From: Bugula neritina
Lineage: Eukaryota > Animalia > Bryozoa
Direction: 5' to 3'
Assembly: GCA_964035545.1 (NCBI GenBank)
Contig: OZ037773.1
Location: 3,687,751-3,751,750 of the forward strand
DNA: 64,000 nt
Made by a program: the position numbers and the translations under genes. Under the pieces are notes generated by a model that saw only the letters and a list, made by a program, of their open reading frames with translations, searched no databases and had not been told where the DNA came from. Below, in pieces: positions 10,022-63,982 of this stretch; the stretch's first letter is position 1; each line of letters starts with the position of its first letter.

Positions 10022-10791
<770 letters not shown>

Positions 10792-22289: not shown

Positions 22290-22386
<97 letters not shown>

Positions 22387-32347: not shown

Positions 32348-33255
32348 TTAGTTTGGTGCAACAGCGGTTGTTCGTTTGCAGCAGCAAATGAGTTTTTTTA
32401 AATGAGCTCGATATCCGGCAACTATGTAAATGTACAAGAACATGTTAACTGTGCCGTAGAGTGATTGGCCGATAAGAAATGTCCACAGCATAGAAGAGAA
32501 CACATTTGGATCAACTTGGTCAAAAGCATTAGTAAAGATTGCAGCAAATGATGGAATGAAAAAGAGATAAAAAAGTAGACACGTCAGCATGATGTAATTC
32601 CCGGCACTTTTCATAGCATCGTCAGCATTTGTATTGTTTCCAAGTTTCATTCGTTGAAATTCTTGGATTACTTTGAAGGAGCAAACACCAATGATAATGG
32701 CAGGGACAGCCAGTGTAATACAGATGATAATGGTGTTGGCAAAATGAGGATTTTCTGGATATGAGCCTTAATCGTGGGCAAGAAGCCAAGAATTTCCCCA
32801 AGTACGAAACTAACAAGCCATACTAAGCCAAGGGAAATTGGAAACTTCTTAATTGCCCAGTTTGTTTCGCTTACCAGAGGAGTGCAGATCATGATGTACC
32901 TTTCATAGCTGCCTAAAGCCAGGATGCCGTTCCGAACAGCTGTAGCAGCAAACACTGACACAGCCGTGGTTTTGAGAATATTAGCAGCGTGTTGGTAATT
33001 CAGATGGTAAATGCCTTCAATCACATTGCAGCTCAACATGCAGATGTACGTCAGACTGGCCACAGCATCAGAAAAACCTATATTCACCAGGATCCAAATG
33101 AAATTAGTTTTTTTCTCAGTCTTCAGAAAGCAAAGCGCAATGATATGCAAAATGTTTATAAGAATACTTGCAGAGTTAGAGGCGACAGTGAAACCAGAAA
33201 GATATGGTTGGTCACACACTTCTGTTATGTTGTTGCATAAGATATCACCTTCCAT
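32348..33255 (-). pseudogene. Intronless rhodopsin-like (class A, chemosensory-type) GPCR with a frameshift after TM4
   Basis: Frame 1 from ATG 33255: TM1 NILH, TM2 FSD, TM3 SYERYIMICTP, TM4 W. TM5-TM7 (NTIIICITLAVPAIII...FFIP...YGTVNMFLY...ICCC) lie in another frame preceded by TAA at ~32770. No intron-sized gap. Confidence 0.75.
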
Positions 33256-33597
33256 TTTATTTCGTACAGTCGGCAACGTATAGCGTTGACTTTCTGACAC
33301 TTTTGCTGACTTTATGACAGCTTGCTGACTGCAGTGTCTTAAACGCAAATTGTAGATGCGCAGCAAAAGGTCTACGATTTCATTGGACGAAGCACCAACA
33401 TAATTATATACGTTTAAAACGTCTAACATTATATTTTTTGAATCACATGATCATGTCTGCATAACTTTATTAGTGTAAGAGCATAATTTTGCATTCAATT
33501 GATGATTCTCATTTTCCACTAGTAAATGCGTTAACTTTGCTGCGGCTAGAATCTGCATTTCAAAATTGCATCTTGTATACATTGGCCCGGCAACTCA

Positions 33598-33880
<283 letters not shown>

Positions 33881-34926
33881 TGCTGATAAACTAAATACTT
33901 TTAGGTGTAGGGAGTATTTCGTAAGAGGTCAGTTTGAGAATGTGCGAGCAACCAACAGTCGCCCCAAACCTTAGAATCTCAATTGACCCTCTTTAAAAAA
34001 GAGAAATGCTAAAAAAATTAATTTATAATATATACTTTATTATCAAATATATATTACTTGTATCAATCCTTATATTCTATTAATAAATATCATTTATGTT
34101 CCTATTTCATATATAAATATATATTATTTCAATCCTTACATTCTATAAATATATTATATTATTAAACAATTAAAAACTGCACCTGAATACTATTTAAGAA
34201 TCAATAAGAATGCCTATGTTTCTTATCGTATGCAAGTGTGATTGTAGGAATAAAAAAAATTGAACATGATACAATAAATGAGTGACTCCACAAAACAAGC
34301 AAGTGTGCCCTATAGCAGTATAACAACGGTATTTTATCAGTTGTTATGTAACTTTAGAGAACAGCATAGAATAATAATAAAAAAGTACATGCAGTGTGAA
34401 AGTAGAGAGTAGATAACTTCAGCTGTGCTCAGTGTCTTCTGCTATTACCTCATCAATCTGCAAATAAATCACATGAAATGCTGATAATTGACTGATAGGC
34501 ATAAGAGTTGTGTGCTCTAGCAAATTTCAAAAGAGTAGCAAGAAAACTGTGACTAAACCTGGGTGCCCGGGTTTTCGTTAGTTTTCTATTTTTAGAAATC
34601 TCATATGTATTGTAATTTAGAAACAAGATAAAAGTTTAAGCAGTTTGAATAATAGCCTGGTTTAAGCTTTCTGATCAGCCTGTCGGCATCATACATGATA
34701 TGCTATTAGTGTGAATAGAACAAATTTAACTTTTTAGCCTGTCTGACAAATAAACTTGACATATGAAGTGATTCATGAAACGAAGCGCTAATGAAATACT
34801 AAACACAGTACGTCATTCATGAGAAGCTGTTTGTGGTGCAGAGAGCTGTACTAAAAGTTTCAATAGAAAATTATTCTTTTTATGTTTTCATTATGAGAAT
34901 TGCCAAATATACTTATCAATTTAGGT

Positions 34927-37900: not shown

Positions 37901-40900
37901 TTACTATATTATAACTACTATAATTATTATAATAACTACATTACTGTATTCATAGCAATACTGTATTATTAGCACAATATTACTGGATTATTAGCACAAT
38001 ATGATTGTATTAGTAGCACTATATTACTGTATTATTAGCACAATATTACTGTAGTAGTAAGCACTATATTACTGTATTAGTAAGCACTATATTACTGTAT
38101 TAGTAAGCACTATATTACTGTATTAGTAAGCATTATATTACTGTATTATTAGCACTATATTACTGTATTACAACTAGACAGAACATACCCTAGCCCGGCT
38201 GTCACTGTAATATATAGCACTGCCACTATCAGGTACCACTGAAGGAATATCTGCAGCTGAAACAGATACAAAAACTCATCGCCTGAACAATGACGATAGA
38301 ATTAGGGCTGCAGATAACTCGGTTGAGTTTAAACAACTTTTTTAATTCAAATTTTCAACAAAAGTGAAGTTCCAAAAAAGTAACGTCTTCAAACAACTTT
38401 AATAGAGCTAATTGCCAGGATATTGCTAAAGTTAGCTAAGTGTTTGATTTGTACCATAAACAGCTATTCCATAACCACCTATTACAGCATGCCTTGAGCT
38501 GGTCTCTGGATAAGCCAAAGAATAAATCTACCATGTATAAAATGGAATGGGCAGTTACACTAGCTTTTTATAAGGAATGTATCAGCATACAAACCAGATG
38601 TAGGCCAGGTTCCAGTTGTTAAAGTTCTGCAACTCTAGAGGGAGCGGCAGTAGTCTAGGGGTTAGAGCATTAACTTAGTATACATGAGTCATGGGTTCAA
38701 ACCCCAGTAAAGGTCATTGGCGATATTAGGAAAAACATCCAGTCACAATAGAGGGGTTTCAAACATCCCTCTAGAGGAATTTGCATTTTAAAGTTGTCTC
38801 CCCCTAAAGGTATTGGGGGCAGTCTCCATAATATATAGAAGGCCCATAAAATAAGTAGAAATGTAAGGTTTGAGTGAAGACTACTACTAGTATAAGTTTC
38901 ATTTTTTCTGAGATTAATATTTTGGCATAAGTACACATATGAGCAGTTTCAAAAACTTTTTAAAAAATTTTGTCAATGATAAATGGCACAAAAACAAAAC
39001 TTCAAAGCATATTTGTGGTTTTGGTTATTGAGCAAATCTGAAGCTGGCAGCTGTCATTATTATTTGCTTTGCTGACTGTAACCAGTCTGTTTAGAGCTGC
39101 TAACCTTTCAACTCTTAGAACAATAATAACATGCTCGTAGACTATATAGCTGCACTAGTGGGCTCTGTCTTACTGAACTCCAAATGCTCCAAATTATGGG
39201 TTGGAACACATGCCTGTAAGTTTATGAAGGCACTGGCTCATTTGTATTAACATGTTCACGTACTTACACACCTATACTATGAAAATAACTAAGCCACCCT
39301 ACTATCTAATATTTCTATATATCAAAAAAATTATTATAAATATAAAGATATGTATTAAAATAGATAGATTAAATTTGTAATTTCAAACAACATCTTATCT
39401 AAAAATGCTAAACACTGTATAACTATAAATATGTTTTAAAAGCATTTGTTTACATGGCATGCCTGCAAGTCAATGAAAATATTTAGAGAACAGTAAAAAG
39501 AAGCATATAAATTTCAGAATAGTTAATTTTTTTCTGAGATAAATATTTTGGAAATGTCCCACAATTCAACGTTTAAATTAAGTCTGTAAAGAAAATTTCA
39601 CAGTGTATTTTCAATAAATAATTATTCTTGCAAGCTGGTTTGCGTTTGTTCTGGCATGCCATTTTACCTCCAGTTAGGTGCAGAAATGGAGATTTTGACC
39701 AAAAAATTCCCCCCTGAATAGCATACTGTTAAAAGTTTTGGGCTTGTGTTAGATAGGCCCTACTAACCTCCATTTTACAGTGGTCTAGTTAACTAGGTCA
39801 AAGTTCATTGAGGTGGAATTGTTTTATTAACCTCGTGTGTTGATAAAATACTATTATTAGATTTAGAACTTCTCTAAACAACTTCACAGTCTGATTAAAT
39901 ATCTGCGATACTTGCCTAGTAGACGATCCAAACTTAAAAAATAATATACTAAATCTTTGTATTACATGTATGGATAAAAAATAATGCAACAAATTGGCTA
40001 AAGCATGTTCAAGTAATGTGAAAAACTCGAAATATAAATGAGTCAAACTAGAGCTAGTCAAGTGTGTAGTGTTTTTGGCCGATTTATATGTGCTGTTTAA
40101 TCAGCTTATTATGTAGTGATATAATCCTATATAATGTAATTTAAGTTAGACAGCTAAAGTTGGACAGTTCTCATCGTGCACTTTCTTGAACAAGCAGTTA
40201 TGTAATATAGAAAGACAGCTACTCAACAGAGAGCTTCAAGCAAACAAAATTCTTGCACCGAGGTTGATTGAATACAAAACAGCTGCTGTTATTCTTATAG
40301 CAGCATGCATTGTATAAGAGATAGCCTGATGGTTCACATAGTTTACATCAATGAACTCAATAATTATTAAGCTATTCCAGCTCAGTGGTTTACATACAGT
40401 GACATACCACTGAAAATTATTAGAAACCACAGAAAAGATATAAAGGAGAGAATGCTGGCACAAAGGAAGTATAGCAATGTGGTTAAATATATGGCTGAAA
40501 ACTGACTTAGAGATAAATAAGTACAAAATGTACATAATATAGCTAAATCAGCAAAGCCAAATGATTTGATATAAAAAGTATTATCTGGGAATTTAGTGAA
40601 ACTTTGTAGTATTATTTAAAATTCCACCTTTGAGCAAGACCCGTATGGAGTAAAGCCAATCTTAATTTCATTAGTGTCATAAGAATGCAGTCATTATGAC
40701 ATAGTTCGTTCTTTCTATACTTTACAGCTGGTACTAAATGTACATTCCAACTCTTTTTTGGAAACAAGCCAAGTTGCTTTGGCTGAAAAGTGCTTTTTTT
40801 GATGATTTTTTTTCTGCAATGCAGCAGTATATAATTTACAATGCTCCAAAAACATTTCTGTATTAGGAATGTTGGTATACCAACAGCTTGCAAGAATATT

Positions 40901-43900
40901 TATTTATTGAAAATACACTGTGAAATTTTTTTTACAGACTTAATGTAAACGTTGAATTGTGGGACATTTCCAAAATATTTATCTCAGAAAAAAGAAACTA
41001 TTCTGAAATTTATATGCTTCTTTTTACTGTTCTCTAAATATTTTTATTGACTTGCAGGCATGCCATGTAAACAAATGCTTTTAAAACATATTTATAGTTA
41101 TACAGTGTTTAGCATTTTTAGATAAGATGTTGTTTGAAATTACAAATTTAATCTATCTATTTTAATACATATCTTTATATTTATAATAATTTTTTTGATA
41201 TATAGAAATATTAGATAGTAGGGTGGCTTAGTTATTTTCATAGTATAGGTGTGTAAGTACGTGAACATGTTAATACAAATGAGCCAGTGCCTTCATAAAC
41301 TTACAGGCATGTGTTTCAACTCATAATTTGGAGCATTTGGAGTTTAGCAAGACAGAGCCCACTAGTGCAGCTATATAGTCTACGAGCATGTTATTATTGT
41401 TCTAAGAGTTGAAAGGTTAGCAACTCTAAACAGACTGGTTACAGTCAGCAAAGCAAATAATAATGACAGCTGCCAGCTTCAGATTTGCTCAATAACCAAA
41501 ACCACAAATATGCTTTGAAGTTTTGTTTTTGTGCCATTTATCATTGACAAAATTTTTTAAAAAGTTTTTGAAACTGCTCATATGTGTACTTATGCCAAAA
41601 TATTAATCTCAGAAAAAATGAAACTTATACCAGTAGTAGTCTTCACTCAAACCTTACATTTCTACTTATTTTATGGGCCTTCTATATATTATGGAGACTG
41701 CCCCCAATACCTTTAGGGGGAGACAACTTTAAAATACAAATTCCTCTAGAGGGATGTTTGAAACCCCTCTATTGCTTCTTTGCCCCAGCTGGATAAGTCC
41801 TTAGCCTGATTTAACAAAAAGCTCTTTCCATCAGGGATGGTGACTATAAACTTGCGTGAGTTTTTATATTCTAACTGAAGAGATCATTAGTATAGCACTT
41901 ACACAAAATACAAGAGTTTACCAAATCGCCACTCACCTGCAAGACGCTCGATTGCCGGCGTACTCTGCATACGTCGCTCCTTCCTCGACTGGCCTCTTCC
42001 TTCAACTGCAACACAACAGTTTCTATGTGGGAGTTGTTTCCTTAACTTATATATATTGCATGTTAACACAACTCCACAATTATACACCAGTTGGCTAGCA
42101 AACGAGATTATGAACTTGAATACCATCAGTTTTAAGTTGATAAGTCTAAATCATTTAATCCAAACCATCAATTTGAACAACCAACGGAACAAAAGTCGTG
42201 TGAATTAATCATAAACCTGAATTACTTGACCAGCAAGTATTTGGTTGACGTAAGATCAGCTTGAACTGTAAACCAGAACAACTGATGGCTAATTGAAAAA
42301 ACTTCCAGTGAAAGTTCATTATCTTCAACTCCGAAATTCATCCTCATTGAATAAACTTCGCTGTGCCAGGTTGACAAAAAATATCTTACAGTCGAGAACA
42401 AGTGGAGTTGCCTTACCAGGGTTATATGTAAACTTGAGTGTGCTGGACACCCCTCTTTCAGTAACCAGCTGCACATTCACAGTGCGCTGTTTTAGTAGCT
42501 GTTTGCCAGAGGGTGGCTTGTACTCGGGATACACTAGCTGAATGGCAGCACATTCGTGGATGTCCTTTTCCCTGTAACGACCTTCAGCTTCCCAACTGGT
42601 CGCCTCGTCATAGAAACGGATCTTCTTGATATCACCTGCATATAGGATACCATAGTGTCACAGTAGCATGTAAACCTTTATTTATTTCCTCACAGGTGAG
42701 GATGACACACCCGTAGGTGAGGATGACACGCCCACAGGTGATGATGACACACCCACAAGAGAGAATGACACACCCACAGGTGAGGGTGACACATTAGGCC
42801 AGTGACCAGGACAAATAGAAAAAAACTTCTGTAATTGAATAACCACAAGCTGTGTTGTAATTATAGAAAGCTCATTGTGTATTGGATCAAAGTACTATGT
42901 ATTTCTACAAACATGCAGTGCCGATCTCGTGTTTTTACAGCTCTTTAGGCTAGGGCCACACGGTGTGGACTCCCCATACATGCAGAAAATCTGTCTAGCC
43001 CAGAAATGGGCTGTTGTGTCTGGATTTTCGTGTGAATAACATGCTGAGCGGAGAGTACATACGGCTCGTTCGAGTTTAATCTAATTGGCTGGTTTCGATT
43101 AGCGAGCACACTTTTTGAATTTCAAGCTACGTTTTGATTTTTAGCGAATTTGATAAAAACATTCGTCAATAATTTGCATTTCCACCTTTATAATATCTAA
43201 ATTTGCATTGCTTACGATGTAGATTTTAAAACAAACCCTCGTAGGCGAGCAGTTAAGTTAAATGCCATCATTAGCTAATAAATTTCCGCACCCACTATCA
43301 ACGCATTGTGTGTGGCAGGTCATTCCCGGGAACGCAATTTTTACTAATTTGGACCTGCAGGTAGAAAATCATGTCTTTGGCCCTAGCATTAAGACCACCT
43401 CACAGCAATAACACAGATAAAGTTATTATAGCATTACATTGGAATTTTCATGTTTGAAAACATTGAATGACACCACAACCATAGGTTCATGCAAACCCCA
43501 GACCGCAATTAATCCTACCAGCATCCATCTGCAGCCATGAAAACTCAGTGTAGAAGAAAGAAGCAGTATTTGCCTAAGTTCTCTCTCTGGCACCATTAAA
43601 GTACAGGGTGCAGGATACAGGACCCTATCTCCTACTAGACACAAAGTAAATTCACTCACCTTTTCTAGTGACTCCATTTATAAGCATGAGCATTTGCTTG
43701 TTACCCGAAGCGGGGCCATGTGTTGGAGTCATCTTCACAATTGCGAGGCTAGCTTTGGCTACAAATATAAGGTTACCTCTACACACGCAAGACATGAGGA
43801 GATAACATTCATATTACTGTTACTGCTGTCACTACTGTCGCTACTACCACTGCCGCTACTACTACTACTACTACCACCACTGCTTTTGCTGATACTACTA

Positions 43901-46900
43901 TTACTACTACCACGGCTACTAAAACTGCTACTATTACCACCACTATCATTACAACTGCTACAATCACTGCTACTATTAGCACTACCACTATATCTGCTAC
44001 TATCACTATATCTAGTACTATCACTACTACTATTACTACTCTCACTATTAAGATAAACGCTGATACTCATGTTACATAAGACAAGAATGAAGCATTAAAT
44101 GATTAAATAATAAAACTGAAACTCACAGGTGGAGTTGTGGATGGGATCAGAACAAACTGGTTGAAGCAGTTGCCACCTGTTATTCTTTACGAATGCCAAC
44201 TGAAAGCATATCTGCACATAATTTCTGTCTATCTTGTTTAGAGGATTATCATCTGCGTCTGCAATGAGAGAATATGTTTGCAATAAGAGAATACGTCTGC
44301 AATGAGAGAATACGTCTGCAATAAGAGAATACATCTGTAATTAGAGAATACATCTGCAATGAGAGAATACGTCTGCAATGAAAGAATACATCTGCAATAA
44401 GAGAATACGTCTGCAATGAGAGAATACATCTGCAACAAGAGAATACGTCTGCAATGAGAGAATACATCTGCAATTAGAGAATACGTCTGCAATGAGAGAA
44501 TACATCTGCAATGAGAGAATATGTCTGCAATAAGAGAATACATCTGCAATGAGAGAATACATCTGCAACAAGAGAATACGTCTGCAATGAGAGAATACAT
44601 CTGCAATGAGAGAATACATCTGCAATATGAGAATACGTCTGCAATGAGAGAATACATCCGCAATGAGATAATATGCCTGCAATGAGAGAATACATCTGCA
44701 ATGAGATAATATGCCGGCAATAAGCAAATACTTGCATATACAATAAGAATGACGAAAACAGCATAGCTATAAACTATGGAAAAAATATAAAGTCACCCAA
44801 GGCATTTCTTTCAGTAGTTTACACACTAAAAATAAGCCACAAAATTCTAAAAATTCATTGAAATCGACCTTTTACATTGTATTGAGCAAAGCAGCTTTTG
44901 TTCAACATTGGTAAAAAGTTGGAGTTGTACCACTTTACCTACTGTAGAGCACACAACTCTACAAGGTCTTACACTAGTAGCCGCTCTGTATATTTATTAG
45001 ATAGCTTATGCCTACTTAATAAAGTTAGCTAGAGAAATGTTTATTAGAAATATATATACCTTGACAGATAGCAGCAAGACATGCTTTATAAAACTACAGG
45101 TTGGCTGATCCTTTGAATAAACATATTTTTAAAGTGTTTGTTTGTGTACATTGTAGAAGTTAATTAAAACCAAGTAACCCTCAAGTATTACTGTGACACT
45201 GATACCACACTAACAAGTAACCCTCAAGTATTACTCTGACACTGATACCACACTAACAACAAGTAACTCTCAAGTATTACTCTGACACTGATACCGCACT
45301 AACAAGTAACCCTCAAGTATTACTCTGACACTGATACCACACTAACAACAAGTAACTCTCAAGTATTACTCTGACACTGATACCACACTAACAAGTAACC
45401 CTCAAGTATTACTCTGACACTAATACCACACTAACAACAAGTAAAAATATCATGCATATATGTTGATAGCTAAGGAAACCCACTTCCATAAGGATCCACT
45501 TTCAACTTCTTGCGCTTGTCCAACTGGGGTTGCCAATCTCTGTTCTTAGCATTGTTCTTACTGGCCACCAGATAGACTTTGTCCAGCCTACGATAGAAGA
45601 GCATCTAACCAATCAGCACGGACAAGACAACCAAATGAATCAATAAAGTGAAGACACTAGTAGCAGGGGTGTAGCAGTAACTAGTAGCAGGGGTGTAGCA
45701 ATAACTAGTAGCAGGGGTGTAGCAGTAACTAGTAGCAGGGGTGTAAAAGTAACTAGTAGCAGGGGTGTAGAAGTAACTAGTAGCAGGGGTGTAGCAGTAA
45801 CTAGTAGCAGGGGTGTAGAAGTGACTATTAGCAGAGGTGTAGAAGTGACTAGTACCAGGGGTGTAGAGTTAGGCCAAGTTTTATCTGCCCCCCCTCCCCC
45901 GCGTGTCATTTTTAGGCGGTTATTAGTAGTGTATACATCATCAGTCCAATAAAAGCATTGCACTACTAGACTGCAGAGAAAATTCAACAATATCAGCTGC
46001 TCCAATGCCACTTCCCTTATCTCAACTACCATATATATACTACATACTGTATCTCAACTACCACATATATACTACATACTGTATCTCAACTACCACACAT
46101 ATACTACATACTGTATCTCAACTACCATATATATACTACATACTGTATCTCAACTACCACACATATACTACATACTGTATCTCAACTACCACATATATAC
46201 TACATACTGTATCTCAACTACCACACATATACTACATACTGTATCTCAACTACTACATATATACTACATACTGTATCTCAACTACCACACATATACTACA
46301 TACTGTATCTCAACTACCATATATATACTACATAGGCTACTGTATCTCAACTACCACATATATACTACATACTGTATCTCAACTACCACACATATACTAC
46401 ATACTGTATCTCAACTACCACACATATACTACATACTGTATCTCAACTACTACATATATACTACATACTGTATCTCAACTACCACACATATACTACATAC
46501 TGTATCTCAACTACCATATATATACTACATAGGCTACTGTATCTCAACTACCACATATATACTACATACTGTATCTCAACTACCACACATATACTACATA
46601 CTGTATCTCAACTACCATATATATACTACATACTGTATCTCAACTATCACATATATACTACATACTGTATCTCAACTACCACATATATACTACATACTGT
46701 ATCTCAACTACTACATATATACTACATACTGTATCTCAACTACCACATATATACTACATACTGTATCTCAACTACCACATATATACTACATACTGTATCT
46801 CAACTACCACACATATACTACATACTGTATCTCAACTACCACACATATACTACATACTGTATCTCAACTACCACATATATACTACTTACTGTATCTCAAC

Positions 46901-49900
46901 TACCACATATATACTACATACTGTATCTCAACTACTACATATATACTACATACTGTATCTCAACTACCACATATATACTACATACTGTATCTCAACTACC
47001 ACATATATACTACATACTGTATCTCAACTACCACACATATACTACATACTGTATCTCAACTACCATATATATACTACATACTGTATCTCAACTACCACAT
47101 ATATACTACATACTGTATCTCAACTACCACACATATACTACATACTGTATCTCAACTACCACACATATACTACATACTGTATCTCAACTACCATATATAT
47201 ACTACATACTGTATCTCAACTACCACATATATACTACATACTGTATCTCAACTACCACATATATACTACATACTGTATCTCAACTACCACACATATACTA
47301 CATACTGTATCTCAACTACCACACATATACTACATACTGTATCTCAACTACCACATATATACTACTTACTGTATCTCAACTACCACATATATACTACATA
47401 CTGTATCTCAACTACTACATATATACTACATACTGTATCTCAACTACTACATATATACTACATACTGTATCTCAACTACTACATATATACTACATACTGT
47501 ATCTCAACTACCACATATATACTACATACTGTATCTCAACTACCACATATATACTACATACTGTATCTCAACTACCACACATATACTACATACTGTATCT
47601 CAACTACCATATATATACTACATACTGTATCTCAACTACCACACATATACTACATACTGTATCTCAACTACCACATATATACTACATACTGTATCTCAAC
47701 TACCACATATATACTACATACTGTATCTCAACTACCACATATATACTACATACTGTATCTCAACTACTACATATATACTACATACTGTATCTCAACTACC
47801 ACATATATACTACATACTGTATCTCAACTACCACATATATACTACATACTGTATCTCAACTACCACATATATACTACATACTGTATCTCAACTACCACAC
47901 ATATACTACATACTGTATCTCAACTACCATACATATACTACATACTGTATCTCAACTACCACACATATACTACATACTGTATCTCAACTACCACATATAT
48001 ACTACATACTGTATCTCAACTACCACACATATACTACATACTGTATCTCAACTACCACATATATACTACATACTGTATCTCAACTACCACACATATACTA
48101 CATACTGTATCTCAACTACCACATATATACTACATACTGTATCTCAACTACCACATATACACCACACATCTGACAGACCGACACTCATGTAGGAAATGCA
48201 GCATTCTTACTGAATTATGTTATTCTCTGAAGTTATTTCCAAGTTCTTTTTAACAACAACTCCATTTTCTGCATTTTCACCCTCTAGTCTGTGAGGATGG
48301 GGCTTGGGGTTTTCATCACTGGACTCTGGAACTGAGACTAAAGAAGCCATGAGAGTTGCCTTTCCCTGGTAACCTATGACCTTGAAAAACAAATAGCTGA
48401 ACAGATTAAGAAAATGTTTAGAGATATTCAGTAACTTGACTTCTGATATTTTATACATGTTTATATATAATAACATTAATATAATATAATAAATTATAAA
48501 GGAATCAAAACATTTACTTTCATTATAACAAAATAAAACCCTTTCATCGGTCACATCCTTGTTTAAGTGATAGTCAAGGTTTGTCTCTATTAACTGAATG
48601 CCAGCTCTAATATTTATCACCTAAAAACAGTGTTTGTTTCCTGGAGATATTACTAACAATGTGACATCACATCACCAGGTGTTAGAGGATGGTGTATGTT
48701 TATGTTTGGTGTCTGCTTACTAAACAAACACAGCTGCCGGATTTCACCTCAATTGTAGAGGTTTCACTTTTTGTATATTTCAAACCAGTGCTGTTCGAAA
48801 TCATTTGTCTGGAGGTTAGAGGGTCAAAAGCAAACTTATGGAGTACAGAATAAGCAACAACAGCCGCTACACTAAGTTCCTGGTTTATCTTTTTTATTAC
48901 TGCCAGTGACCATTGCACATGGAGGCAGATATCAGCGTCAAGAGAAAGTAAAGTAAACATAATATCTGGTGCAGAACATCTATTTGTAGATACCTAACAA
49001 CGAGACTGTTGGACCATTGCATATAGCATTGGGTCAACTGTACTTTATATACCAGGAAGATATGTGGTGTTCTGACAATAATATAATATTCAGTTCAACT
49101 GTAACTGTATAATAAGTATCCTAATAAATGGAAGTATTTTAATTCTAATAAGATAAGAGTGAGGTTGTTCAGTGCAGAGGTGAATATAGTTACATGCGTT
49201 CAGTCAATATCTTCTTTACATTCTGGAGTAATGTGACACCCTGAGCTTTGTTGTTATCGATACAAGGAAATGTTGCCCTCTGCGTGTTTAAATATTATGA
49301 TCAGATATTCAAGAGTTCGGGTATGATCAGTTGTACATCATTATGTAAAATATCCCATAGGTAAAAGCATCATTTGGCAGTTGATTTGCCCATTAATTCA
49401 CCCTGTATACTATGTTCCAGGTCTCAGCACCATACAGTAAGGCAGCAAGCACCTAGTTTACTATATTCATTATATTGCTCTCTGTAGTATTGAGGGGACA
49501 GTGCAGGATAGTAAATGCAAAGGTGTAGTTTACTGGGGGTAGTATAGCTGGATGGGGAAACCAAAGTGCCACAGCAAACATACCATATCCAACTACCAGG
49601 CATTGACAGAAAGCCATTGTGTGAGCACCCACAGAATCCGGAAAAAGTTACTAGTTTTTATTTGATTAAGTGAACAAGGAAGTTAATAACTGCAAGTAGT
49701 GAACTGAGAGGTTGTTTGTCACAGCAGAGTATAACTGGTGGAATGACGTATTAGTAAGTTATTAGGCATGCGCGTACAAGTTTGACGAGCCAGCTATCTT
49801 CAACGGTATCTTTACGGAATGGCTTTACAACACGGTGGAAGTTTCCAAACTATTACGTATGGGAAAATTTATTTCCCAGGAAAGTTGACTCGTGTAATAA

Positions 49901-51035
49901 AATGATGCAATGCCACGGCTAGCATAACTTAATCAATAGTCTAACTGGCCTTCTATAGAGTATCAGTATGATTTAAGCAGCCGCTTATATTACACTTTGA
50001 TATTACAGATAATCTTTCTTCACAGTTTTTTATAGAACATAAATGGTAAACTGCTAATATATTTGCTTACTGTTCACCAAGCATTCAAAATCCAAAAACT
50101 ACTAAAAATGACAAGTTTCAACAAGCCCTTGGCATTGACCTTACCAATCTATCTCGCAGTTAATTTGAAATATACCAGAGATAAACTATACCTGCCATAT
50201 AAAACAAATAACTTTAAGCAGTTTACCTGGCAGTAAACTAAGGATAGGCTGCACAGAGCAGTAATTAACAAAATATATAAATAATGAGAAAATCAACATC
50301 ATTACTACTCTACTGGAAAGACTTCGCTATAAAACATGAGCCGGAGAGTACTCTAGGGCAACCAGTGCCCTGTCCAACAGGAGGCCCCAGGACCGGGTGA
50401 GGGAAAGGGGAAAAGGGGAAAAGCCTGCATTTATATGGCCCTCAAAGGTATAACAGCTAATTAATTAGATTGGAAAAACCACTTATTCATATACATGTAT
50501 GCTACAAGACATGCAGCTTGCAGTAGTTATTGGGACTTCATTGTGTAATGATAAGTAGGAGTTTTGAAAAATACTGATGTTGTGGCCCCCAGCTATAGTT
50601 TAAAAAGTGACCCTCGTCACTGGAATATTCTAGTTCAGTGGCCCTTGATCTGAATAGGCTGGACACCCCCTCCCCCCCTCTAGACACTTAGCCATCTTGG
50701 AAAACGAGCTTACCTTCACTGTAGGCCAAGGTTTATCACCAGCTCCAGTGATGTTTGCTCTACCCGCTTCAGAACTGTAACGGTACCTGCAGGTAATATT
50801 TCAAAGCAATAAATTAATAAACACCCGCAGCAAATGACAGCAAAATAAATGACAGCTAAATTGTAGACAACTAAGTATAACAGACGACAGGAAATACAAA
50901 CCTGAGAGATGGGATGGGCTGGGTCTCAACCACCAGCTTGCCATGTTCCTCGGAGAGAGCTTGTGGCATCTCTGGTAGAATTGGATAAAGGGCAAAGTTG
51001 TTATACAGCAGCACCTGATTGCTGCCAGAATGCAT
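34927..51035 (-). CDS. Divergent Rel/NF-kB-family transcription factor, copy A (RHD + IPT + NLS + long low-complexity C-terminus, no ankyrins), ~831 aa
   Basis: 13 phase-compatible exons on minus: 50902-51035, 50714-50786, 48211-48380, 45484-45587, 44127-44258, 43660-43758, 42417-42635, 41937-42005, 38189-38256, 37325-37424, 36628-36701, 35243-36484, 34927-34938. RHD motifs LVVETQPIPSLRYRYSSEAG, PTVKVIGYQGKA, PKPHPHRLEG, VDPYG, VQICFQ, PVCSDPIHN; IPT motifs IRFYDEATSWEAEG, DIHECAAI, FTYNP; basic RKERR. The last micro-exon (LSF*) is least certain. Confidence 0.87.
34943..35180 (-). repeat. 19-bp minisatellite x~12 of acceptor-like units before the terminal exon of Rel copy A
   Basis: Minus-strand unit catgttctgtcacagtaca; the final degenerate unit ends ...tcacaatgcag|CTT. 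Confidence 0.9.
36043..36308 (-). repeat. Coding 21-bp repeat, (ATQDLGH)n / (ATQDISQ)n
   Basis: About 12 heptad units in the large exon of Rel copy A. Confidence 0.9.
36710..37146. repeat. 16-bp minisatellite (atgatgatacagtgat) x~27 abutting an acceptor
   Basis: Tandem copies ending within ~10 nt of the AG at 36702-36703. Confidence 0.92.
37758..38170. repeat. AT-rich degenerate tandem repeats (attactactat; tattactgtattagtaagcacta)
   Basis: Direct reading. Confidence 0.8.
38640..41865 (+). mobile_element. tRNA-derived SINE split by a DNA transposon (5' half 38640-38749, 3' half 41771-41865)
   Basis: Joining the halves gives ...catccagtcacaattgcttc..., colinear with the intact SINE at 57481 (catccagtcataattgctcc). 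Confidence 0.85.
38750..41770. mobile_element. 3.0-kb non-autonomous ISL2EU-like (PIF/Harbinger-related) DNA transposon with ~890-bp TIRs
   Basis: Arms 38750-39637 and 40884-41770 are near-perfect reverse complements; AG...CT termini; 2-bp AT duplication shown by the split SINE. Internal minus-strand remnant DCILMTLMKLRLALLHTGLAQRW (~40620-40700) resembles the HTH_Tnp_4 motif of ISL2EU/Harbinger transposases. Confidence 0.85.
43812..44050. repeat. Degenerate (CTA/CCA/CTG)n trinucleotide tract, intronic
   Basis: Direct reading. Confidence 0.85.
44256..44722 (-). repeat. 19-bp minisatellite x~24 containing a splice acceptor of Rel copy A
   Basis: Minus-strand unit tattctctcattgcag|acg; the last copy is the real junction attctctcattgcag|acgcagat at 44258. 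Confidence 0.92.
45172..45443. repeat. 43-46-bp minisatellite x~6
   Basis: caagtaaccctcaagtattactctgacactgataccacactaa(caa). Confidence 0.9.
45656..45868. repeat. 24-bp minisatellite (actagtagcaggggtgtagcagta) x~9
   Basis: Direct tandem copies. Confidence 0.9.
46018..48160. repeat. 32-bp minisatellite, ~2.1 kb (~67 copies), in intron 3 of Rel copy A
   Basis: Unit gtatctcaactaccacatatatactacatact, head-to-tail with no spacers. Confidence 0.97.
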
Positions 51036-55351: not shown

Positions 55352-58300
55352 ATGACTACCAACGAACTGCTTGAAGTTACTATTGCCGCTCAACCACCCG
55401 AATGTATTGGGTGAGTTATATTGACAGTCTAAGCCAAATTTATAGAATATTTGTTTTTAAGTTACTGCTCCCAATACTTTTTTAAAAACAGTTGAAGTTT
55501 TCTTGTAAATTGATCACTAAATAGTGCAACTGTATTTGTAGCAAAATTCGATATTTAGATAAAGATGGTAAAGGAGGCGGGCCCATAAAATGTTACCATG
55601 ATTCAAATAGAACAGGCTTTTCTGTTCAGGTAAGGAAAACATTAGCCATAGCTAGAGCAACTTTACTAAACAATTTGAATATTAAGTAGACCTTCAAATC
55701 ATCTCAGTTGTACATAGTATTGACACATAATTGCTAAAATAAAAAAAATGTTGTATAACGTTTAATAGTTACCAGATTTTTCATATTCATAGTTATTTAT
55801 TGAAAATTTTATTTCAATATAGAACTTTAACTGAAGTTGTTATGATGGTGACAATGTTTCTACCTAATCGAAAAATACGATGAAATATTCTAATTCTACT
55901 GTGTAGGTGGAGTTGAAGAAGCTAAACCTTTCATATAAAATTTTTGCGACTTTTCTCTCTGCTTTAGTCATCTTCATAGGGTTTATCTTGTTTTTTGATA
56001 TAATTAATATTCTCTTTAGTCAAGCCAAGTAGTTTTTGTAGCTTTGATGCACAATACCAAATTGTTAAATATTATTAAAAAAAAATGGTCAAAATAGCCT
56101 GCGTTTGGCCACCTGGTGGCTTAATGTGTGCTACACTATCATGTGACCGCCCTGCCACATAAGCAGGTTCTAAGAAGGCTATCAATTGAATGCCGAGGCA
56201 GATATCCTTGAATATTTATTCTAGCCTATGGCCCAGTACATAGGGGTCTCTGCCTAGTGTGTATCAGCTAGGTTGCTCAATCAGCTATTTTCAAGGTCAC
56301 CAGCAATGTCAGGAAAAGCATTCCCCATAAGGCACTAATTAGAAACGCCTTAGGCACATTGTAGTGTTTGGCAGAGATTGTGGCTTGTCTGAGTGTGCTT
56401 GGAATTTCCGAGGGGGATTTTACATTACGTAATGTTACCCTTGAATGCATACTCACTTCAAACTCTTTACGCATATACATTAATACGTGTAGAATATAAG
56501 CACTCACTATAGTTAGAAGAATATCAATGCCACAATTACTGTTGCTTGTTGCAGGTCAAATCAAATTCTCCTCAGCCTCATGGCAGCCAGGTCAAGGTTA
56601 TAGCTTTCTGTGTGACGGACACGCAGCCCGTGGCGTACCACCCTCTACTGCTCATAGAAAATGGTGGAGGCACAGACCAGGTGCATGGAGTAGTCACTAG
56701 AGATCTCTGTCTGACGGATAGAGTGAAGAACATCAGGTATAACACGCCCATTTCCTTCTGGGTAGTTTATTTCATCAGCAGATGGGCTATCCTTGCTGAT
56801 TTCATAGTTGTAGCTGATATCGAGAGTTGCTGCTTACAGTGTAAAAGAAATGAAAGGTTTGTAGAGACAATATTGAAAAAGTTGGTATCCGTTTTGTACA
56901 GTGACCACAAATATGCCATGCTATTTCGCACTGGGCCCCATCATCACTTCTGACAGCTTTATTTTTATATACTGTTATTTGTTATTATGTTTCCTTTCTA
57001 ATTGTTTGTCTGCTCTTGTAACTTATGCTAGTTGTGAAACACTGTATTATGATGAAAATAAAACACACACACACACACACACATGCTGGTTCAAGAATTG
57101 TTTCACAGTCATGCATGCGTGTTGGGTTTCTTCCTCAGCCACCACCACAAGGGGATGGGGTGTTGAGTCATTACAATATTTCGTAGACAGGTTTTATTAA
57201 AACTATTCAAATAGTATTCAAATAGTAATATAATCGGTATATTTAATGAAGTCATTTTAGTAATATTAGAAACTTTTCACAAAAGTTTAAACAAGTTTCA
57301 AAGACAAAAATTTCAAAAGGGTGACTCAATGTTTTTATTTGTACAGGGCAACTGAAACGGAAAAGTTTCCCCTTCCAGTAAGACTTTTGTGTGCATTTGC
57401 TCTTAAATTAGAAAGTTTAAAAGTACTGACACACAATGTGTAAACAGTCTCTTTACTGGCTCACTTCCTGTTATACATAAGGGAGCAGCCGTGATCTAGG
57501 GGTTAGAGCGTTTGCCTAGTAAGCTCGAAAGTCATGGGTTCGAGCCCGGACAAAGGCCATCGGTCATGTTAGGAAGAGCATCCAGTCATAATTGCTCCTG
57601 TGCCTCATTTAAATAAGTCATTAGCCCCATTTAACAAAAAAACTTTTCATCAGGGGTTTTCTCACAGGGATAGTGACTATAAACTTACGTGAGTTTTTTC
57701 CTATTATATACACTTTATGTTCTGTTGTCAAAGTACTAGTAAAACATTTTCTCTTCAATGTTGAATTTTTTTAATTAATTATTGTTGATTAACCTTGCTG
57801 TAATAGTGATTTGGTCTGCATACTGCACCTGTAGTCACTACTAAACGGTTGTAGTCACTACTAAACGGTTGTAGTTGCTACTAGACGGTTGTAGTCACTA
57901 CTAGACGGTTGTAGTTACTAATGTACAGCTGTAGTTACTCCCAAACAGCTGTAGGTGGTACATTAACTAGCAGTTACAAAAACTCATAACTACATTATCT
58001 TAAGTTGTAAGTACCGTTACTGATTCTAGCAATAAAGGTTAAAATCTGAATTACTGTGTCAAGCTGTCAACCCCCCCCCCCTTAATGCTGGTAAAGGGGG
58101 GGGGCTAAAACTAGTTGATTGGCTGCAAAGGACAGGAGTTGAACTGACATGTTTTATTTCTACTGGAATATAACAACAGTTTAAAATTCATGCAGTGATT
58201 GATGTTGAGTGTGTTATATTTTGCAGTTTTGGCAGAATCAAGATAGCTCAATGTAGCAAGGACCTTGTTAGAAAGTGTCTTGAGGAAAGGGAGAGGCATT

Positions 58301-61300
58301 TGAACATGCTTGGAATCAATGGTGTGTAAAGAATAGAATTAGCCAAAGTTTGTCTAGAGGCAGGGTATTCATCGAAGCTGTCTAGATAATTGTTAACATA
58401 GCTGTCTTCTCTTGTTTTAGTGTGTTTTTTCTGTCTATTTATATTTTATAATAATAGTTGGTATAGTCAGTAAATCAGTATAGCAGTCAGTAAACTCATG
58501 AATGAGTGTTTTTCCTATTAGAAATTTATATTTAACTTATTTTCATCTCCCCTGTAACTTTGAACCATTCCAAACAATGCAAAGTGTGGAATATAATTTT
58601 TTAAATTGAAATAAAATATATAAAGTGTATAAATAAATTTTGGACCTTGGCTCCGTATTGACTCTGATTGTATTATATTTATTCTCAGCACAACCTGGTG
58701 CCGTGCAGTCTGGGACAGTCTCGAAGAACAACGAGTTTAAAATAGCTGTATATGTCGTGGAGACAACTCCAGATAGTGGAAAGAAACTCATAAACTCTGT
58801 AATGACCGACTCCGTGGAAATTATTAGTGAGTTAGAGTTATCTCCCCTGTTGCATAATCTGTATATTGGATATAGTCAGATAACTTTTCTATATATGACT
58901 TGTTTTTAATGTTTTAGAATTGTTTAGTTCAGTCCTGATCCTTTGTAGCAAAATTTCGAGTCTAAGCAAGGATTGTACATAAAAACCAAAGTCAATTTTT
59001 TTAATTATTTGCATGAGATTATATTACATTGGAGTTTTACAGTTTTTTTTTCTGTTCTCCAACAATAACTTTTCATAAACAAAATTCGAAAAAATGTGAC
59101 TAACCTAAATAATCTTTCCCTAGTATCCAATGTTTCCACTAAATAATTATATTATTTACTTTTATCAATACAAGTACATCCATTTTTTAAGATTTTACAT
59201 AAAATAATTTATTGTTCCGTTAATCTTGTTATACTTGTCTCCTATAAATTTCCAACATACATTGATGTTTGTGACATCAATTATAGTGTTGAGCCTTTGA
59301 AGTAGTCTTGAAGTACTGTTATGTTTTGCTTTCAGCTGATTCGTTCAAAATAAAAAAAGTTGTGCCCTGTGAGATTTCAGCCAATGGTGGAGAAATTGTC
59401 TTAATTTGTCAACCTTTCAAGTCAAGCGCAGGTAAATGTTTTTTAATTTCACGATATTACCACTATTAAATTTTAGCAAAATAAAGCTGCCCTCTGTCAA
59501 ATATATGAAAATATTATGTTGCTTTATTTAGAAAAATGTTTAGATTTAGATGGCTTTCGATGCAATAGACCCATTTCAGCACTGATCAGTAACTAAAACC
59601 ACAAAAATGCTTTCAAGTTTATTTCCGTCAAATTATGCATGAAGAAATATTTTTAAAAAATCTTCTGAACTGCTAATACATGTGCATATATCAAAATATC
59701 TATCTCCTAAAATAACAATTTTATAACATAATTAGAATTTTAAGTAGCCAAACTTTAAATTTTTAATGAGTTTGCTCTTTATACAAAGGTTCAACCTATT
59801 CACTTTGGGAGGACACAACTTTTAATTATAAAGGGGATATCAGGGACGACTGAAAAGGGTCTATTATTTTAAAAAGTTGTAAAAGATTGTCAAATCTCTA
59901 CAACATTACAACAACTGTAAAACCACCTGCTTGATCAGGAAGAAAAATGATGAAATAATAAATTTAAAGATCTTCTGTTGAAGTCGTTTTGTTAGCTGCT
60001 TTGTAAAATATTCTGATTTTTAAGTCTAATTTCACTTGTAAAAAGCTGTTTCTTCTATATATCAACAATATTATTGAGTTGTTTATCAATAAAAACAGTT
60101 GAAAATCTTGTGATGAGGACAACTCCTAATCTGTTGTTTTATTACTGGTAGTTATATGTCATATTCCTGTAAGCAATGGTGATTTAGACACAATGGCTGT
60201 TAAATTTTGTGACACATTTGGCTGGGAGATTACGAAACCATTGAATAAGAAGAATATTCATGAAAGTTCAGTCATTAAACTGGATGCCCCGAAATATCCT
60301 TCTCCGCAAAGTAGACGCTCCAAAGTGTTTATCAAGCTGTGCTCAATGACCTTGAGAAAACCTAATGCAAGTCCTGGTTTCCCTTTTACTTACAGTAAGC
60401 ATTCAACTAGCAACTAGTTGCTACTAGTAAATAGTAACTAGTTGCTAGTAACTAATAATTAATTACTAGCAACTAGTTACTAGTCGCTAATAACTAGTTG
60501 CTAGTAACTAGTTGCTACTAGTAAATAGTAATTAATTACTAGTAACTAGTTGCTAGTAACTAGTTGCTAGTAAATAGTTACTAGTTGCTAGTAAATATTA
60601 ACTAGTTGCTAGTAAATATTAACTAGTTGCTAGTAACTAGTTGCTAGTAACTAGTTGCTAGTAACTAGTTGCTAGTAAATAGTTGCTAGTTACTAGTGAT
60701 TAGTTACCAAAATACTAGTAACTAGTCTCCACAAACCATTGATGTTCTTATTTTATTGTTAATATCTTGTTTTGAAGTGAGTGTAATCCTCAATATAGTG
60801 GTCTTGAAGTGAATACTGTATATGCATATAATATTAACAACTATTTCTGAAAGGTATTTCATGGTGATTTCACTATTGTTCTGTTATTAGCTATTGTTAG
60901 TTTGTTTTTCTCATTAAAAATAAGTCTTATATATTCAAATTGTATAATATAATTGTTTTTAATTTAGTTTCTGATGAGAGTGTATGCAGACCTGATCGAA
61001 AAAGAAGGAGAATGAAAGGAAATATTGAGGTTAGCAATATACCTATAAAATATTTGTATCGAAATGTGTGTAAGCGTAAGTGTGTATGTATAATGTATAT
61101 GTGGGTGGGTTTGCATGTATGCAGCATGTATGGATATATACATAGATGTAAGCATCAGTGAGTTCATACATTGTGCAAATACAATTGGTGGACATCTTGT
61201 GTTAATATAGTAAGTCAAAGTTACTTTCTAAACATGTTGAAGTTATATTAATAGATCATCAGTTATTTCAAATAACTAAAAGATAATCAGATTGTTGTCC

Positions 61301-63594
61301 AGTAGTAATGGCATTGGATTAGTAATGGAACAAATGGCAAAGTAGGTAAAAATGGCACATTTTCAATATTAAGGTTCAGGGTAGTGGTTTAGGTTTGGGG
61401 TTGAGGGTTTGAGTTTGAGATTGGGAAAATTTAACAAACTGTGCCGTTTTACCTACTTCTCTATTTGTAGCATTATTACCTGTGCCATTATTATCTGTGC
61501 CATTATTACCGGACACCCATTTGATTATCTGTGCTACTTTTACCTAAAATCAATAAAATGATCAGTTCATTGATATCAAATTACGTTTTTATTACCATTC
61601 CTTGTTCATAGGTTGTGAAGAAAAAGCTGGCAGTTGTTGCGGACAATGAAGACGTGCCGGCTGTACTCAACAGCATCTCCTTGTCTTCTGGTTCCTCTGC
61701 CGGCTCCTTTCCGAGTAACGAGAAGTCGGTGATCGAGTCAGCCATTACGAAGTCACTTGAGTCAGAAACTGGTGCTGCTTACCAACACACTTCCATTCAG
61801 ACATGCGCCAACTCCGTTGACATCGGACAAAGTCGCAACATTGAAAGTGAACTTCTAAGCGCTGCTTCACAAGGTGAAAGCCCTGAAAACAGAGCCGAAG
61901 TCGGTGGTCTGTTAAATGTGGTGGTTGGCTCAATGCTGCACCAAACTCAACGTGTCTCTAATTTCCACTGCTCTGATCAGAATCAAAATTACTTCTCTCC
62001 GAGCTCTGCTGGGAAGGGTGCTGCAACTCTACCACCCCATCCTTCTAATGTGGCTTGTGGGTTCTCTTCTCAAGATACTGGATTCCTACCAGTTGGTTTC
62101 TACGCTTCTCCGATTCACCAAATCAGCAACTCTCAAGGCTCAGCTGTTACTAACTCTCACACAGATGGTTTTATGACCAACCACCTTGCTACTGCTGTCC
62201 ACTCCCACACGAATGGTGTCATGACCAACCACTTTACTCCTGGTGTCAACTCCTATACGAATGATGTCATGACCAACCACCTTGCTACTGGTGTCAACTC
62301 CTATACGAATGATGTCATGACCAACCACTTTACTCCTGGTGTCAACTCACACACGGATGGTGTTGCTGCTGCTACATCTCATCATGTAGCTCATACCAAA
62401 GCAGAGAGCAACCAAGCTCCATATTCCAATCATACTCCATTAATGTCAAATCAACGGAGTCTTTGTTCGTTAGACATTGCATCTGACCTGCACCCCTGGC
62501 CTTCGTTCAGTGCCGTGAGTAGACAACAGACCACCAAGGTGTCTGGGGGAGATAATTCGAGTCTGAATCTGAGCGAAGAAGTAAGTTAAATAATGCAAAT
62601 GTATGTTAAACAGTGCAGCTGTAAGTTAACCGGTGAAGCTGTAAGTTAAATAGTGCAGGTGTGAGTTTAACAGTACCTTTGTGAGTTTCAGTAAAGTACA
62701 TACAGTTGGTGCATACTCTGATAGGTTAGTACTCTGTATATGAATATATGAAAGCCTTAAAGTATTTAAGATAAAGTTTTACAGTAAGTTATAATCAATT
62801 CACTAGGTTCATATTGTTACCTACAAACTATACTGTTACAACGTGATACTTGGTTTTACTTCCAACTCTGTATCTTTTGTTTTAGCTGAATGATAAACTT
62901 TCTTTTCGGGAACTGTTATCTTCAGACAAGGTTTGTTTTAATCAATTTAAATCTTTGTGTTTTTATTCAAGGAGTTAATACTACTTTGATGTAGAGTCCA
63001 TTTTTACATTTTGCATCCTGGTTCATTTTTTTCCAATGAAAATGTGTGCCACTCCTTGGTCATAATTCAGGTATTTTTAGTTTACTTTTATCTACAACTC
63101 TTAGTAACATATAATATCAATAATTTTGTATAATATATAATATAATATAATGTATGGCATACTATATAATATATAAGGGTATATTATATAATGCATATTC
63201 ATTATCATCAGAACCATAAAATATGTATTTATCCAGGGTTATTCTCTCTTGTTTTAGAATTTAGATAGTGTGATGAGTACGGGCTCCAGCTTATCCACCC
63301 CGCCATCTAGTCTAGGTCAACCCAAAGAAAAATCTGTACGAGACGTGGTAAGTTGGCATCTGGGTGCCAGTTTGACAGTGTTTTATCTTATTACCAGAGC
63401 TAGTAATACTTTAGTGAGTAAGGTATAGTCACTAAATAACTGGTAGAGTCACTGGTAGTGGTAGTAGCAGCAGTAGTGGTGGTGCAGTAGTGGTAGTAGT
63501 AGAAGTAGTAGTAGTAGTAGTAGTAGTGGTAGTAGCAGCAGTAGTGGTAGTAGTAGTAGTAGTAGTAGTGGTAGTAGTGGTAGTAGTAGTAGTG

Positions 63595-63648
<54 letters not shown>

Positions 63649-63653
63649 ATAGC

Positions 63654-63684
<31 letters not shown>

Positions 63685-63740
63685 ATAGTAGTAGCAGTAG
63701 CAGCAGTAGTAGTAGTAGTAGCAGTAGTAGTAGTAGTAGC

Positions 63741-63772
<32 letters not shown>

Positions 63773-63982
63773 CAGCAGTAGTAGTAGTAGTGGCGGTAGT
63801 GGCGGCAGTGGCAGTAGTAGTGATAGGGGTGGTGGTAGTAGAGGTGCTAGTTGTAGTTTAGTCACTGCAGTAAGGGTATTTGTAGTAGTGTAGTCCCTAG
63901 GACACAGGTGCTTGGGGTAGTATAGTCACTAGGGCGCAGGTACTTGTAATTTCCTCTGTATTTGCAGATTATGGGCCAATAA
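55352..63982 (+). CDS. Highly divergent Rel/NF-kB-family protein, copy B (RHD + IPT + NLS + low-complexity C-terminus), ~666 aa
   Basis: 11 phase-compatible exons: 55352-55410, 55542-55629, 56555-56736, 58227-58321, 58689-58826, 59336-59431, 60188-60394, 60968-61029, 61612-62580, 63258-63347, 63968-63982. Motifs VTIAAQP..KIRY, VIAFCVTDTQPVAYHPLLL, FGRIKIAQCSKDLVRKCLEER, FKIKKVVPCEISANGGEIVLIC, VKFCDTFGWE, NIHESSVIKLDAPKY, FPFTY, NLS RKRRR. Confidence 0.8.
57481..57698 (+). mobile_element. Intact tRNA-derived SINE (~218 bp)
   Basis: tRNA-like head with A-box-like tgatctagggg and B-box gggttcgagccc; central ggaagagcatccagtc resembles the Meta-SINE core (from memory); T-rich tail; at least 5 copies in the window. 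Confidence 0.8.
57830..57955. repeat. 20-bp minisatellite (gtagtcactactaaacggtt)
   Basis: About 6 degenerate copies. Confidence 0.8.
59567..59862. mobile_element. 296-bp MITE, AG...CT termini, AT duplication (ISL2EU-like)
   Basis: ca[at]agacccatttcag ... ctgaaaagggtct[at]ta; short TIRs with one mismatch. Confidence 0.7.
60405..60725. repeat. Degenerate ~14-bp repeat (tagttgctagtaac)
   Basis: Starts just after the donor at 60395. Confidence 0.85.
61295..61551. mobile_element. MITE family B copy
   Basis: acaaatggcaaagtaggtaaaaatggcacattttcaat...ttacctaaaatc, homologous to 15693-15951. Confidence 0.75.
62150..62362 (+). repeat. Coding 48-bp repeat (TNDVMTNH[LA/FT][T/P]GVNSY) x~4
   Basis: In-frame 16-aa repeats in the large exon of Rel copy B. 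Confidence 0.88.
62581..62700 (+). repeat. Degenerate 20-bp repeat x6, each unit starting with a splice-donor hexamer
   Basis: gtaagt/gtatgt/gtaagt/gtaagt/gtgagt/gtgagt at 62581, 62601, 62621, 62641, 62661, 62681. Confidence 0.75.
63455..63845. repeat. (GTA)n trinucleotide microsatellite, intronic
   Basis: Direct reading. Confidence 0.95.

Follow-up and report, generated by a model that had tools for sequence, protein, structure and literature searches.

The window analysed here is a 64,000-nucleotide stretch of the genome of the bryozoan Bugula neritina (G000:C9:3687751-3751750; an AT-rich animal genome of 216 Mb), in which two Rel-type genes, referred to as copy A and copy B, lie head to head. 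Copy B is a real, fast-evolving, lineage-specific Rel paralogue. Its intron positions and phases, common to other Rel-type genes of this genome, show descent from a Rel gene, yet neither its N-terminal DNA-binding subdomain nor its recognition loop agrees with the sequence definitions of the family. Copy B probably no longer reads normal kB sites, and it may plausibly serve as a partner or modulator subunit.

Read from the genomic sequence, copy B comprises nine exons (Table 1) with a coding sequence of 1905 nucleotides (nt) and a single terminal stop, specifying 634 amino acids (aa). All introns are of the GT-AG type with pyrimidine tracts, and their phases are 2,0,2,1,1,1,1,0. The first seven of these (2,0,2,1,1,1,1) are identical in copy B, in copy A and in the canonical Rel gene of this genome, a class II gene of Rel/Dorsal type located about 1 Mb from copy B on the same contig (G000:C9:4684240-4694239, locus L009). 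Lengths of exons 1-7 are 59/88/182/95/138/96/207 nt in copy B and 74/88/155/92/147/99/231 nt in canonical Rel, exon 2 being 88 nt long in both, and copy A has the same layout as the other two. Because phases, exon-2 length and layout match those of canonical Rel and copy A, copy B is Rel-derived by its gene architecture. The reading of spliced exons 1 and 2 proposed in an initial annotation of this locus was confirmed with consensus splice sites; their product is MTTNELLEVTIAAQPPECI-G-KIRYLDKDGKGGGPIKCYHDSNRTGFSVQ, in which the junction runs ...QPPECIG followed by KIRYLDKDGK. In canonical Rel and copy A, intron 1 lies within the first Arg codon of RxRY (AG^G, the caret marking the intron), while in copy B it lies within the codon preceding Lys (GG^C), a shift of one codon relative to both. 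A possible source of this shift is the intron-1 acceptor of copy B (TAG^CAA), which resembles a tandem NAGNAG site that has decayed.

Table 1. Features of copies A and B in window coordinates (IPT, dimerisation domain; NLS, nuclear localisation signal).
Feature	Position	Strand	Description
Copy A	35213-50969	minus	ATG at 50969; head-to-head neighbour of copy B
Copy A exons 1-2	50714..50969	minus	MPQALSEEHGKLVVETQPIPSL-R-YRYSSEAGR...; near-canonical loop; comparator
Copy B exon 1	55352..55410	plus	ATG at 55352; MTTNELLEVTIAAQPPECI and 2 nt of a Gly codon; ends ...GAA TGT ATT GG, donor GTGAGT
Copy B exon 2	55542..55629	plus	88 nt; (G)KIRYLDKDGKGGGPIKCYHDSNRTGFSVQ; acceptor ...TTTGTAG; ends ...GTT CAG, donor GTAAGG
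Copy B recognition loop	55543..55572	plus	K-I-R-Y-L-D-K-D-G-K, counterpart of RFRYxCEGR
Copy B exon 3	56555..56736	plus	corresponds to the PHPH..LVG exon; unique in the genome
Copy B exon 4	58227..58321	plus	FGRIKIAQCSKD...; QC.K anchor kept; K123 equivalent is Asp
Copy B exon 5	58689..58826	plus	end of the N-terminal subdomain
Copy B exon 6	59336..59431	plus	first half of the IPT/dimerisation domain (..NGGEIVLIC..)
Copy B exon 7	60188..60394	plus	second half of the IPT/dimerisation domain
Copy B exon 8	60968..61029	plus	NLS RKRRR at 60997-61011
Copy B exon 9	61612..62589	plus	325-aa Ser/Thr/Asn-rich tail with 16-aa repeats; stop codon

In the region of the recognition loop, the aligned sequences are QP-SSKST-R^FRYECEGR in canonical Rel (the region as a whole reading RFRYECEGRFAGSI), QP-IPSL-R^YRYSSEAGR in copy A and QP-PECI-G^KIRYLDKDGK in copy B. 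In a MAFFT alignment of the exon-2 peptides of copy B, copy A, canonical Rel and the p105-type gene of the same genome, KIRY falls on RFRY/RYRY, and the Smith-Waterman comparison follows the same diagonal. The Arg and the Tyr are the only loop columns invariant among these four Rel-type genes. The spacing from QP to RY in copy B is that of canonical Rel, and the protein contains the pattern [KR]xRY a single time, at residue 21; the probability of finding it by chance at the expected place ±1 is about 4e-4. At the level of codons, ATT CGA TAT of copy B stands opposite TTT CGT TAT of canonical Rel. The register of KIRY on RFRY assumed in the initial annotation is thus upheld by both alignment methods and by the uniqueness of the pattern.

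It could be argued that there is an error in the register or the gene model, such that KIRY matches by chance and exon 2 does not correspond to the exon of the recognition loop, since exon 2, taken by itself, is not significantly similar to any Rel and intron 1 lies one codon off its place in copy A and canonical Rel. We regard this as very improbable. The 88-nt exon length, both flanking phases, the QP-to-RY spacing, the two alignment methods and the unique [KR]xRY all agree, and no other exon-2 candidate was found between 51.1 and 56.6 kb, from the promoter side of copy A to exon 3 of copy B. Moreover, for each of exons 1-5 the best local match lies at an equivalent position: VTIAAQP/VEIIEQP (the best local match of exon 1 to canonical exon 1), RY..G..G.I, HP..L/GV.T, QCSK/QCKK and PD-SGK/PDESGK.

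Compared with the Rel/NF-kB recognition loop RFRYxCEG, copy B reads KIRYLDKD(G) and departs from the motif, in agreement with the initial annotation. Identity is limited to the R and Y, with conservative replacement of R by K and of F by I; the Gly is displaced by one residue, and altogether five or six of the eight positions are changed. The stretch from Tyr to Gly is one residue longer in copies B and A than in the consensus, and Asp flanks the loop Lys of copy B on both sides. If the insertion is placed after the Glu, as in copy A, the equivalents of C38 and E39 in copy B are D,K, while the Smith-Waterman placement makes them K,D and keeps the Gly. Because these equivalents depend on where the one-residue insertion is placed, a charge reversal at the Glu is not secure. 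Of the equivalents K,R,Y,D,K first proposed, the superposition of KIRY on RFRY therefore stands, while D,K at C38/E39 and the charge reversal are not secure, K,D being the alternative. The literature describes RFRYXCEG as indispensable for DNA binding throughout the NF-kB proteins. Cys occupies its position 6 in nearly all cases, but insect Relish and one Nematostella allele have Ser there and NFAT has Thr (PMC2751831). Conservation of the loop extends to opisthokonts outside the animals (PMC8763368).

Searches with copy B were run exon by exon, and its exons were joined only in scripts for reading frame, composition and stop-codon simulation. The Pfam model of the DNA-binding part of the Rel homology domain (RHD), RHD_DNA_bind (PF00554), matches no exon of copy B at E up to 1. 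A phmmer search of PDB with exons 2 and 3 retrieved no Rel structure, only one chance match to a nanobody (E 1.2). For exon 3, no relatives were found in a large HMMER search through a library of 1.8 billion proteins, which is weak evidence as the library evidently does not hold the spliced protein of copy B itself; four matches that this search did return are repeat proteins inflated by many partial matches, and they were rejected as relatives. The protein atlas likewise gave no usable match to exon 3. In a shuffle test of exons 1-5 combined, copy A and canonical Rel are clearly similar (p 3e-7), whereas copy B is not significantly similar either to canonical Rel (p 0.22) or to copy A (p 0.43); exon 3 of copy B is marginal in comparison with the canonical exon (shuffle p 0.05; hhalign P 0.056). 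The local matches at equivalent positions listed above fit extreme divergence of a domain that is still collinear. By these comparisons, the degeneracy is domain-wide and not confined to the loop, the whole N-terminal subdomain having lost detectable similarity, and the view of the loop as a special lesion in an otherwise normal domain did not hold.

Positions contacting DNA were taken from a list of p65 contacts (PMC9223357) and transferred by exon-wise comparison. The equivalents of R35 and Y36 are invariant and those of R33 and R41 are Lys in copy B, while the K123 equivalent is Asp, the linker bearing R187 is shortened, and the R246 equivalent is Glu in copies B and A and Gln in canonical Rel. 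The former residues would suit a protein that still binds DNA sequence-specifically but with a new specificity, its longer loop reading a different half-site. Also consistent with such a protein are the Asp that the Smith-Waterman placement brings to the Glu position with the Gly kept, several basic residues retained in the loop, an acidic residue one position from the canonical Glu, selection on exons 5 and 6, which adjoin the DNA-facing linker (see below), and the long C-terminal tail, which could serve as an activation domain. Nevertheless, we consider a new specificity unlikely. Position 6 of the loop is Asp or Lys in copy B, instead of the Cys or Ser of Rel/NF-kB proteins or the Thr of NFAT (PMC2751831), the remaining contacts are altered as described (K123 to D, R246 to E, the R187 linker), and similarity is undetectable across the whole subdomain.

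In the other half of the RHD, only exon 7 is recognisable. It is the sole exon of copy B matched in the exon-wise Pfam search, weakly, by the model RHD_dimer (PF16179). With tblastn it retrieves exon 7 of canonical Rel at 2e-4 and exon 7 of copy A at 5e-4, and the shuffle test gives p of at most 5e-4 for both; exon 6 resembles exon 6 of copy A with p 0.0125. The RKRRR motif reported in the initial annotation is present: exon 8 carries this NLS directly after the RHD, where the corresponding exon of canonical Rel has its basic stretch. The 325 aa of exon 9 have no Pfam match at E up to 1 and are thus without recognised ankyrin repeats, as is characteristic of class II proteins; the p105-type gene lies elsewhere, on contig C1. 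Residues 11-36 of exon 9 (61642-61719) contain the motif PAVL..IS...S.GS.F.S in common with canonical Rel.

An orthologue of copy B was found by a word search with exons 9 and 7, in two short metagenome contigs of the Joint Genome Institute (sample 3300002729). Contig L036 spans exons 4-7 and contig L012 exons 8-9, with identity of 82-86% including introns. As L036 matches only the locus of copy B in the B. neritina genome, the two contigs were assigned to the orthologue from a related lineage. The ratio of nonsynonymous to synonymous substitutions (dN/dS), calculated by the Nei-Gojobori method between copy B and these contigs, is 0.34 for exons 4-8 pooled (bootstrap 0.19-0.64; Fisher p 0.0009), 0.25 for exon 5 and 0.12 for exon 6. 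In exon 8 the orthologue differs by one Arg-to-Lys replacement and two silent changes, and the NLS is conserved. In-frame indels of the orthologue were observed in exon 5 (+3), exon 7 (-24) and the exon 9 repeats (+48, +96), and a 78-nt genomic deletion in exon 4 preserves the frame by means of a new GTAAAG donor. In a neutral simulation, 0.5% of coding sequences were free of stop codons after 0.075 substitutions per site, whereas the frame of copy B is open despite a divergence from copy A and canonical Rel far beyond this value. Low dN/dS in exons 4-8, indels that are mostly in frame and a frame open past the neutral expectation argue that copy B is maintained as a coding gene; neutral evolution, raised as a possibility in the initial annotation, is not borne out by these data. 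Constraint is strongest at the junction of the subdomains, in the first IPT half and in the NLS, and weak on exon 7 and the tail. Compared with the window, a public sequencing run holding the locus shows a single-nucleotide polymorphism upstream and an insertion in an intron, while the only difference within the exons of copy B is a 3-nt in-frame deletion in exon 7, at 60299.

The reading that we favour, held tentatively and at somewhat less than even confidence, is that copy B has kept nuclear import and the dimerisation half, no longer reads the canonical kB half-site and acts through dimers. What it retains is the Rel architecture, a recognisable second IPT half, the NLS and the short motif that follows it; its N-terminal DNA-reading subdomain has been remodelled throughout, leaving in the loop Arg-Tyr, one conservative Lys and the displaced Gly. 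The protein would enter the nucleus and pair with a Rel-type partner, which may be the neighbouring copy A, canonical Rel or copy B itself, and in such a dimer it would supply a subunit unable to read a normal kB half-site. It would therefore modulate or redirect Rel-dependent transcription instead of acting as a standard activator at kB sites.

A more specific proposal would make copy B a dedicated decoy or partner of the Rel family, comparable to the Id proteins, in which selection keeps nuclear import and dimerisation while the kB-reading surface is dismantled, and would place it in a cluster of A, B and a more diverged copy C with stepwise loss of DNA reading. This seems rather doubtful to us. 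For the candidate copy C stretch, tblastn with exons of copy A, copy B and canonical Rel gave no significant match. Id proteins of the helix-loop-helix family and truncated Rel isoforms keep a dimerisation surface and have no working DNA-reading element; the analogy with them is functional only. Copy B differs from them in that its N-terminal subdomain is of full length and its C-terminal tail is long.

Several observations weigh against copy B being a nuclear, dimerising subunit that does not read kB sites. Its dimerisation is deduced from sequence alone, and the match of exon 7 to RHD_dimer, at 17.4 bits and E 0.0046, lies below the 28.3-bit cut-off; the IPT dimerisation domain described as kept in the initial annotation is thus detectable, but its match is weak. 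With four basic residues left in the loop and two Asp beside the Glu position, copy B may yet bind DNA. Exons 1-3 of the orthologue were sought in metagenomes with peptide patterns of exon 3 (550 pattern matches, 0 confirmed), with a degenerate DNA pattern encoding IRYLDKDGK (23 loci, all unrelated to the window, which says little on conservation of the loop) and by a word search with exon 3 and its read-through (no candidate). They were not found, and selection is accordingly measured from exon 4 on. In exons 7 and 9, dN/dS is about 1.0 and 0.89, respectively. The deletion in exon 4 of the orthologue costs 19 codons, and at the start of exon 9 it lacks 23 nt (L012:700-760 compared with 61612-61660 of the window), a frameshift if the acceptor of copy B is used. 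With that acceptor conserved, the orthologue would meet a stop 27 codons past the NLS, while the downstream frame of 331 codons is still open, so here the orthologue may make an RHD-only product or use a shifted acceptor, unless the assembly is in error. Finally, a search of the public runs yielded no RNA run, the only one that holds the locus of copy B being DNA of the same species.

The dN/dS values of exons 7 and 9, the two deletions, the failure to find an RNA run and the lack of relatives in very large protein libraries would also suit a duplicate that is turning into a pseudogene, no longer needed and with a frame still open by chance. This explanation appears quite unlikely, as exons 4-8 have a dN/dS significantly lower than 1 (p 0.0009), none of the 16 splice sites is damaged, the exon 4 deletion preserves the frame through its new donor, and the NLS is conserved. 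Furthermore, the frame of 634 codons has survived divergence from copy A and canonical Rel far beyond saturation, while in the simulation survival had fallen to 0.5% already at 0.075 substitutions per site.

Comparison with canonical Rel shows the same number of exons up to the NLS exon, the same phases, the 88-nt exon 2, the post-RHD NLS, PAVL..IS at the opening of the last exon and no ankyrin repeats. The difference lies in recognition of the exons: in PDB searches, exon 2 of canonical Rel matches Gambif1, RelB, c-Rel and p65 at 1e-8 to 1e-5 and its exon 7 matches p50, p52 and p65, while exons 1-5 of copy B match nothing. Copy A shares with copy B the layout, the loop longer by one residue, and IHE in exon 7 where canonical Rel has IHQ. 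Unlike copy B, it keeps R-Y-R-Y-S-S-E, with Ser at position 6 as in insect Relish, and it is recognised by Pfam, with RHD_DNA_bind matching exons 3 and 5 and RHD_dimer matching exon 7 at 35 bits. Natural variation at position 6, as in the Cys and Ser alleles of Nematostella Nv-NF-kB and in insect Relish, is known to change DNA-binding properties (PMC2751831). Each of these variants has one conservative substitution and an RHD that is otherwise canonical, whereas in copy B five or six of eight positions are altered, as is the remainder of the subdomain.

Few elements in any family of animal transcription factors are as conserved as the RFRYxCEG loop. If the reading favoured here is correct, copy B would be a natural experiment in how a Rel protein functions without reading kB sites, and it would illustrate how dominant-negative or partner subunits arise by duplication. 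In the literature searched, we found no description of a dedicated Rel-family paralogue that dimerises but does not bind DNA, and no paper on bryozoan Rel genes. Genes of this kind are missed by annotation based on domain models; copy B is invisible to Pfam annotation and to very large protein searches and was recognised through its exon architecture, its position beside copy A and its exon 7.

A six-frame scan of the whole genome with RHD_DNA_bind detected canonical Rel, the p105-type NF-kB gene on contig C1 and, weakly, copy A; copy B was not among the matches. The corresponding scan with RHD_dimer detected the same three genes and one further locus on C1, again without copy B. This additional locus (G000:C1:3554192-3554368, minus strand), located outside the window, matches RHD_dimer over profile positions 1-58 at 37 bits, and the genome-wide scan gave no RHD_DNA_bind match nearby. 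It could be an NFAT-type gene or another diverged Rel copy. In copy A, exon 2 was first taken to be an open frame at 48703-48993 (minus strand; HKFAFDPLTS...); with its true exons 1-2 at 50969-50714 (RYRYSSEAGR), that frame is intronic.

The motif that follows the NLS, ..D.PAVL..IS...S.GS.F.S, is common to copy B, its orthologue and canonical Rel (L009:6770-6850), with 52% identity over 27 aa, and outside it the tails of copy B and canonical Rel are unrelated. This motif may have a regulatory or docking function. The repeat unit of exon 9 is about 16 aa long (NSHT.GVMTNH..TGV; window 62150-62370), and its copy number differs from that in the orthologous contig L012 (+16 and +32 residues).

A very highly repeated element resides in introns 3 (57400-57800) and 6 (59600-60000) of copy B and at L036:1886-2130, its summed contig depth reaching about 660,000 in comparison with about 140 for unique sequence. 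One copy is inserted in intron 6 of the orthologue at a place where the B. neritina genome has none. ARAGORN predicted no tRNA in this element. Introns 3 and 4 of copy A are filled by two long arrays of tandem repeats (45950-48250 and 44240-44800); in the second, directly upstream of exon 5, each unit ends in an acceptor-like TTGCAG.

Past the 3' end of copy A, the window holds an open frame for a rhodopsin-type G protein-coupled receptor (32351-33450, minus strand; 7tm_1, E 7e-6) and, at lower coordinates, exons of a major facilitator superfamily transporter (25305-28450, minus strand; MFS_1, E 1e-7). Long microsatellites of the types (TG)n, (TA)n-(TG)n and (GTT/GCT)n were located at 9900-10840, 22140-22640, 33470-33970 and 63430-63930, and a spike of GC skew at 10-12 kb is due to such long microsatellites.

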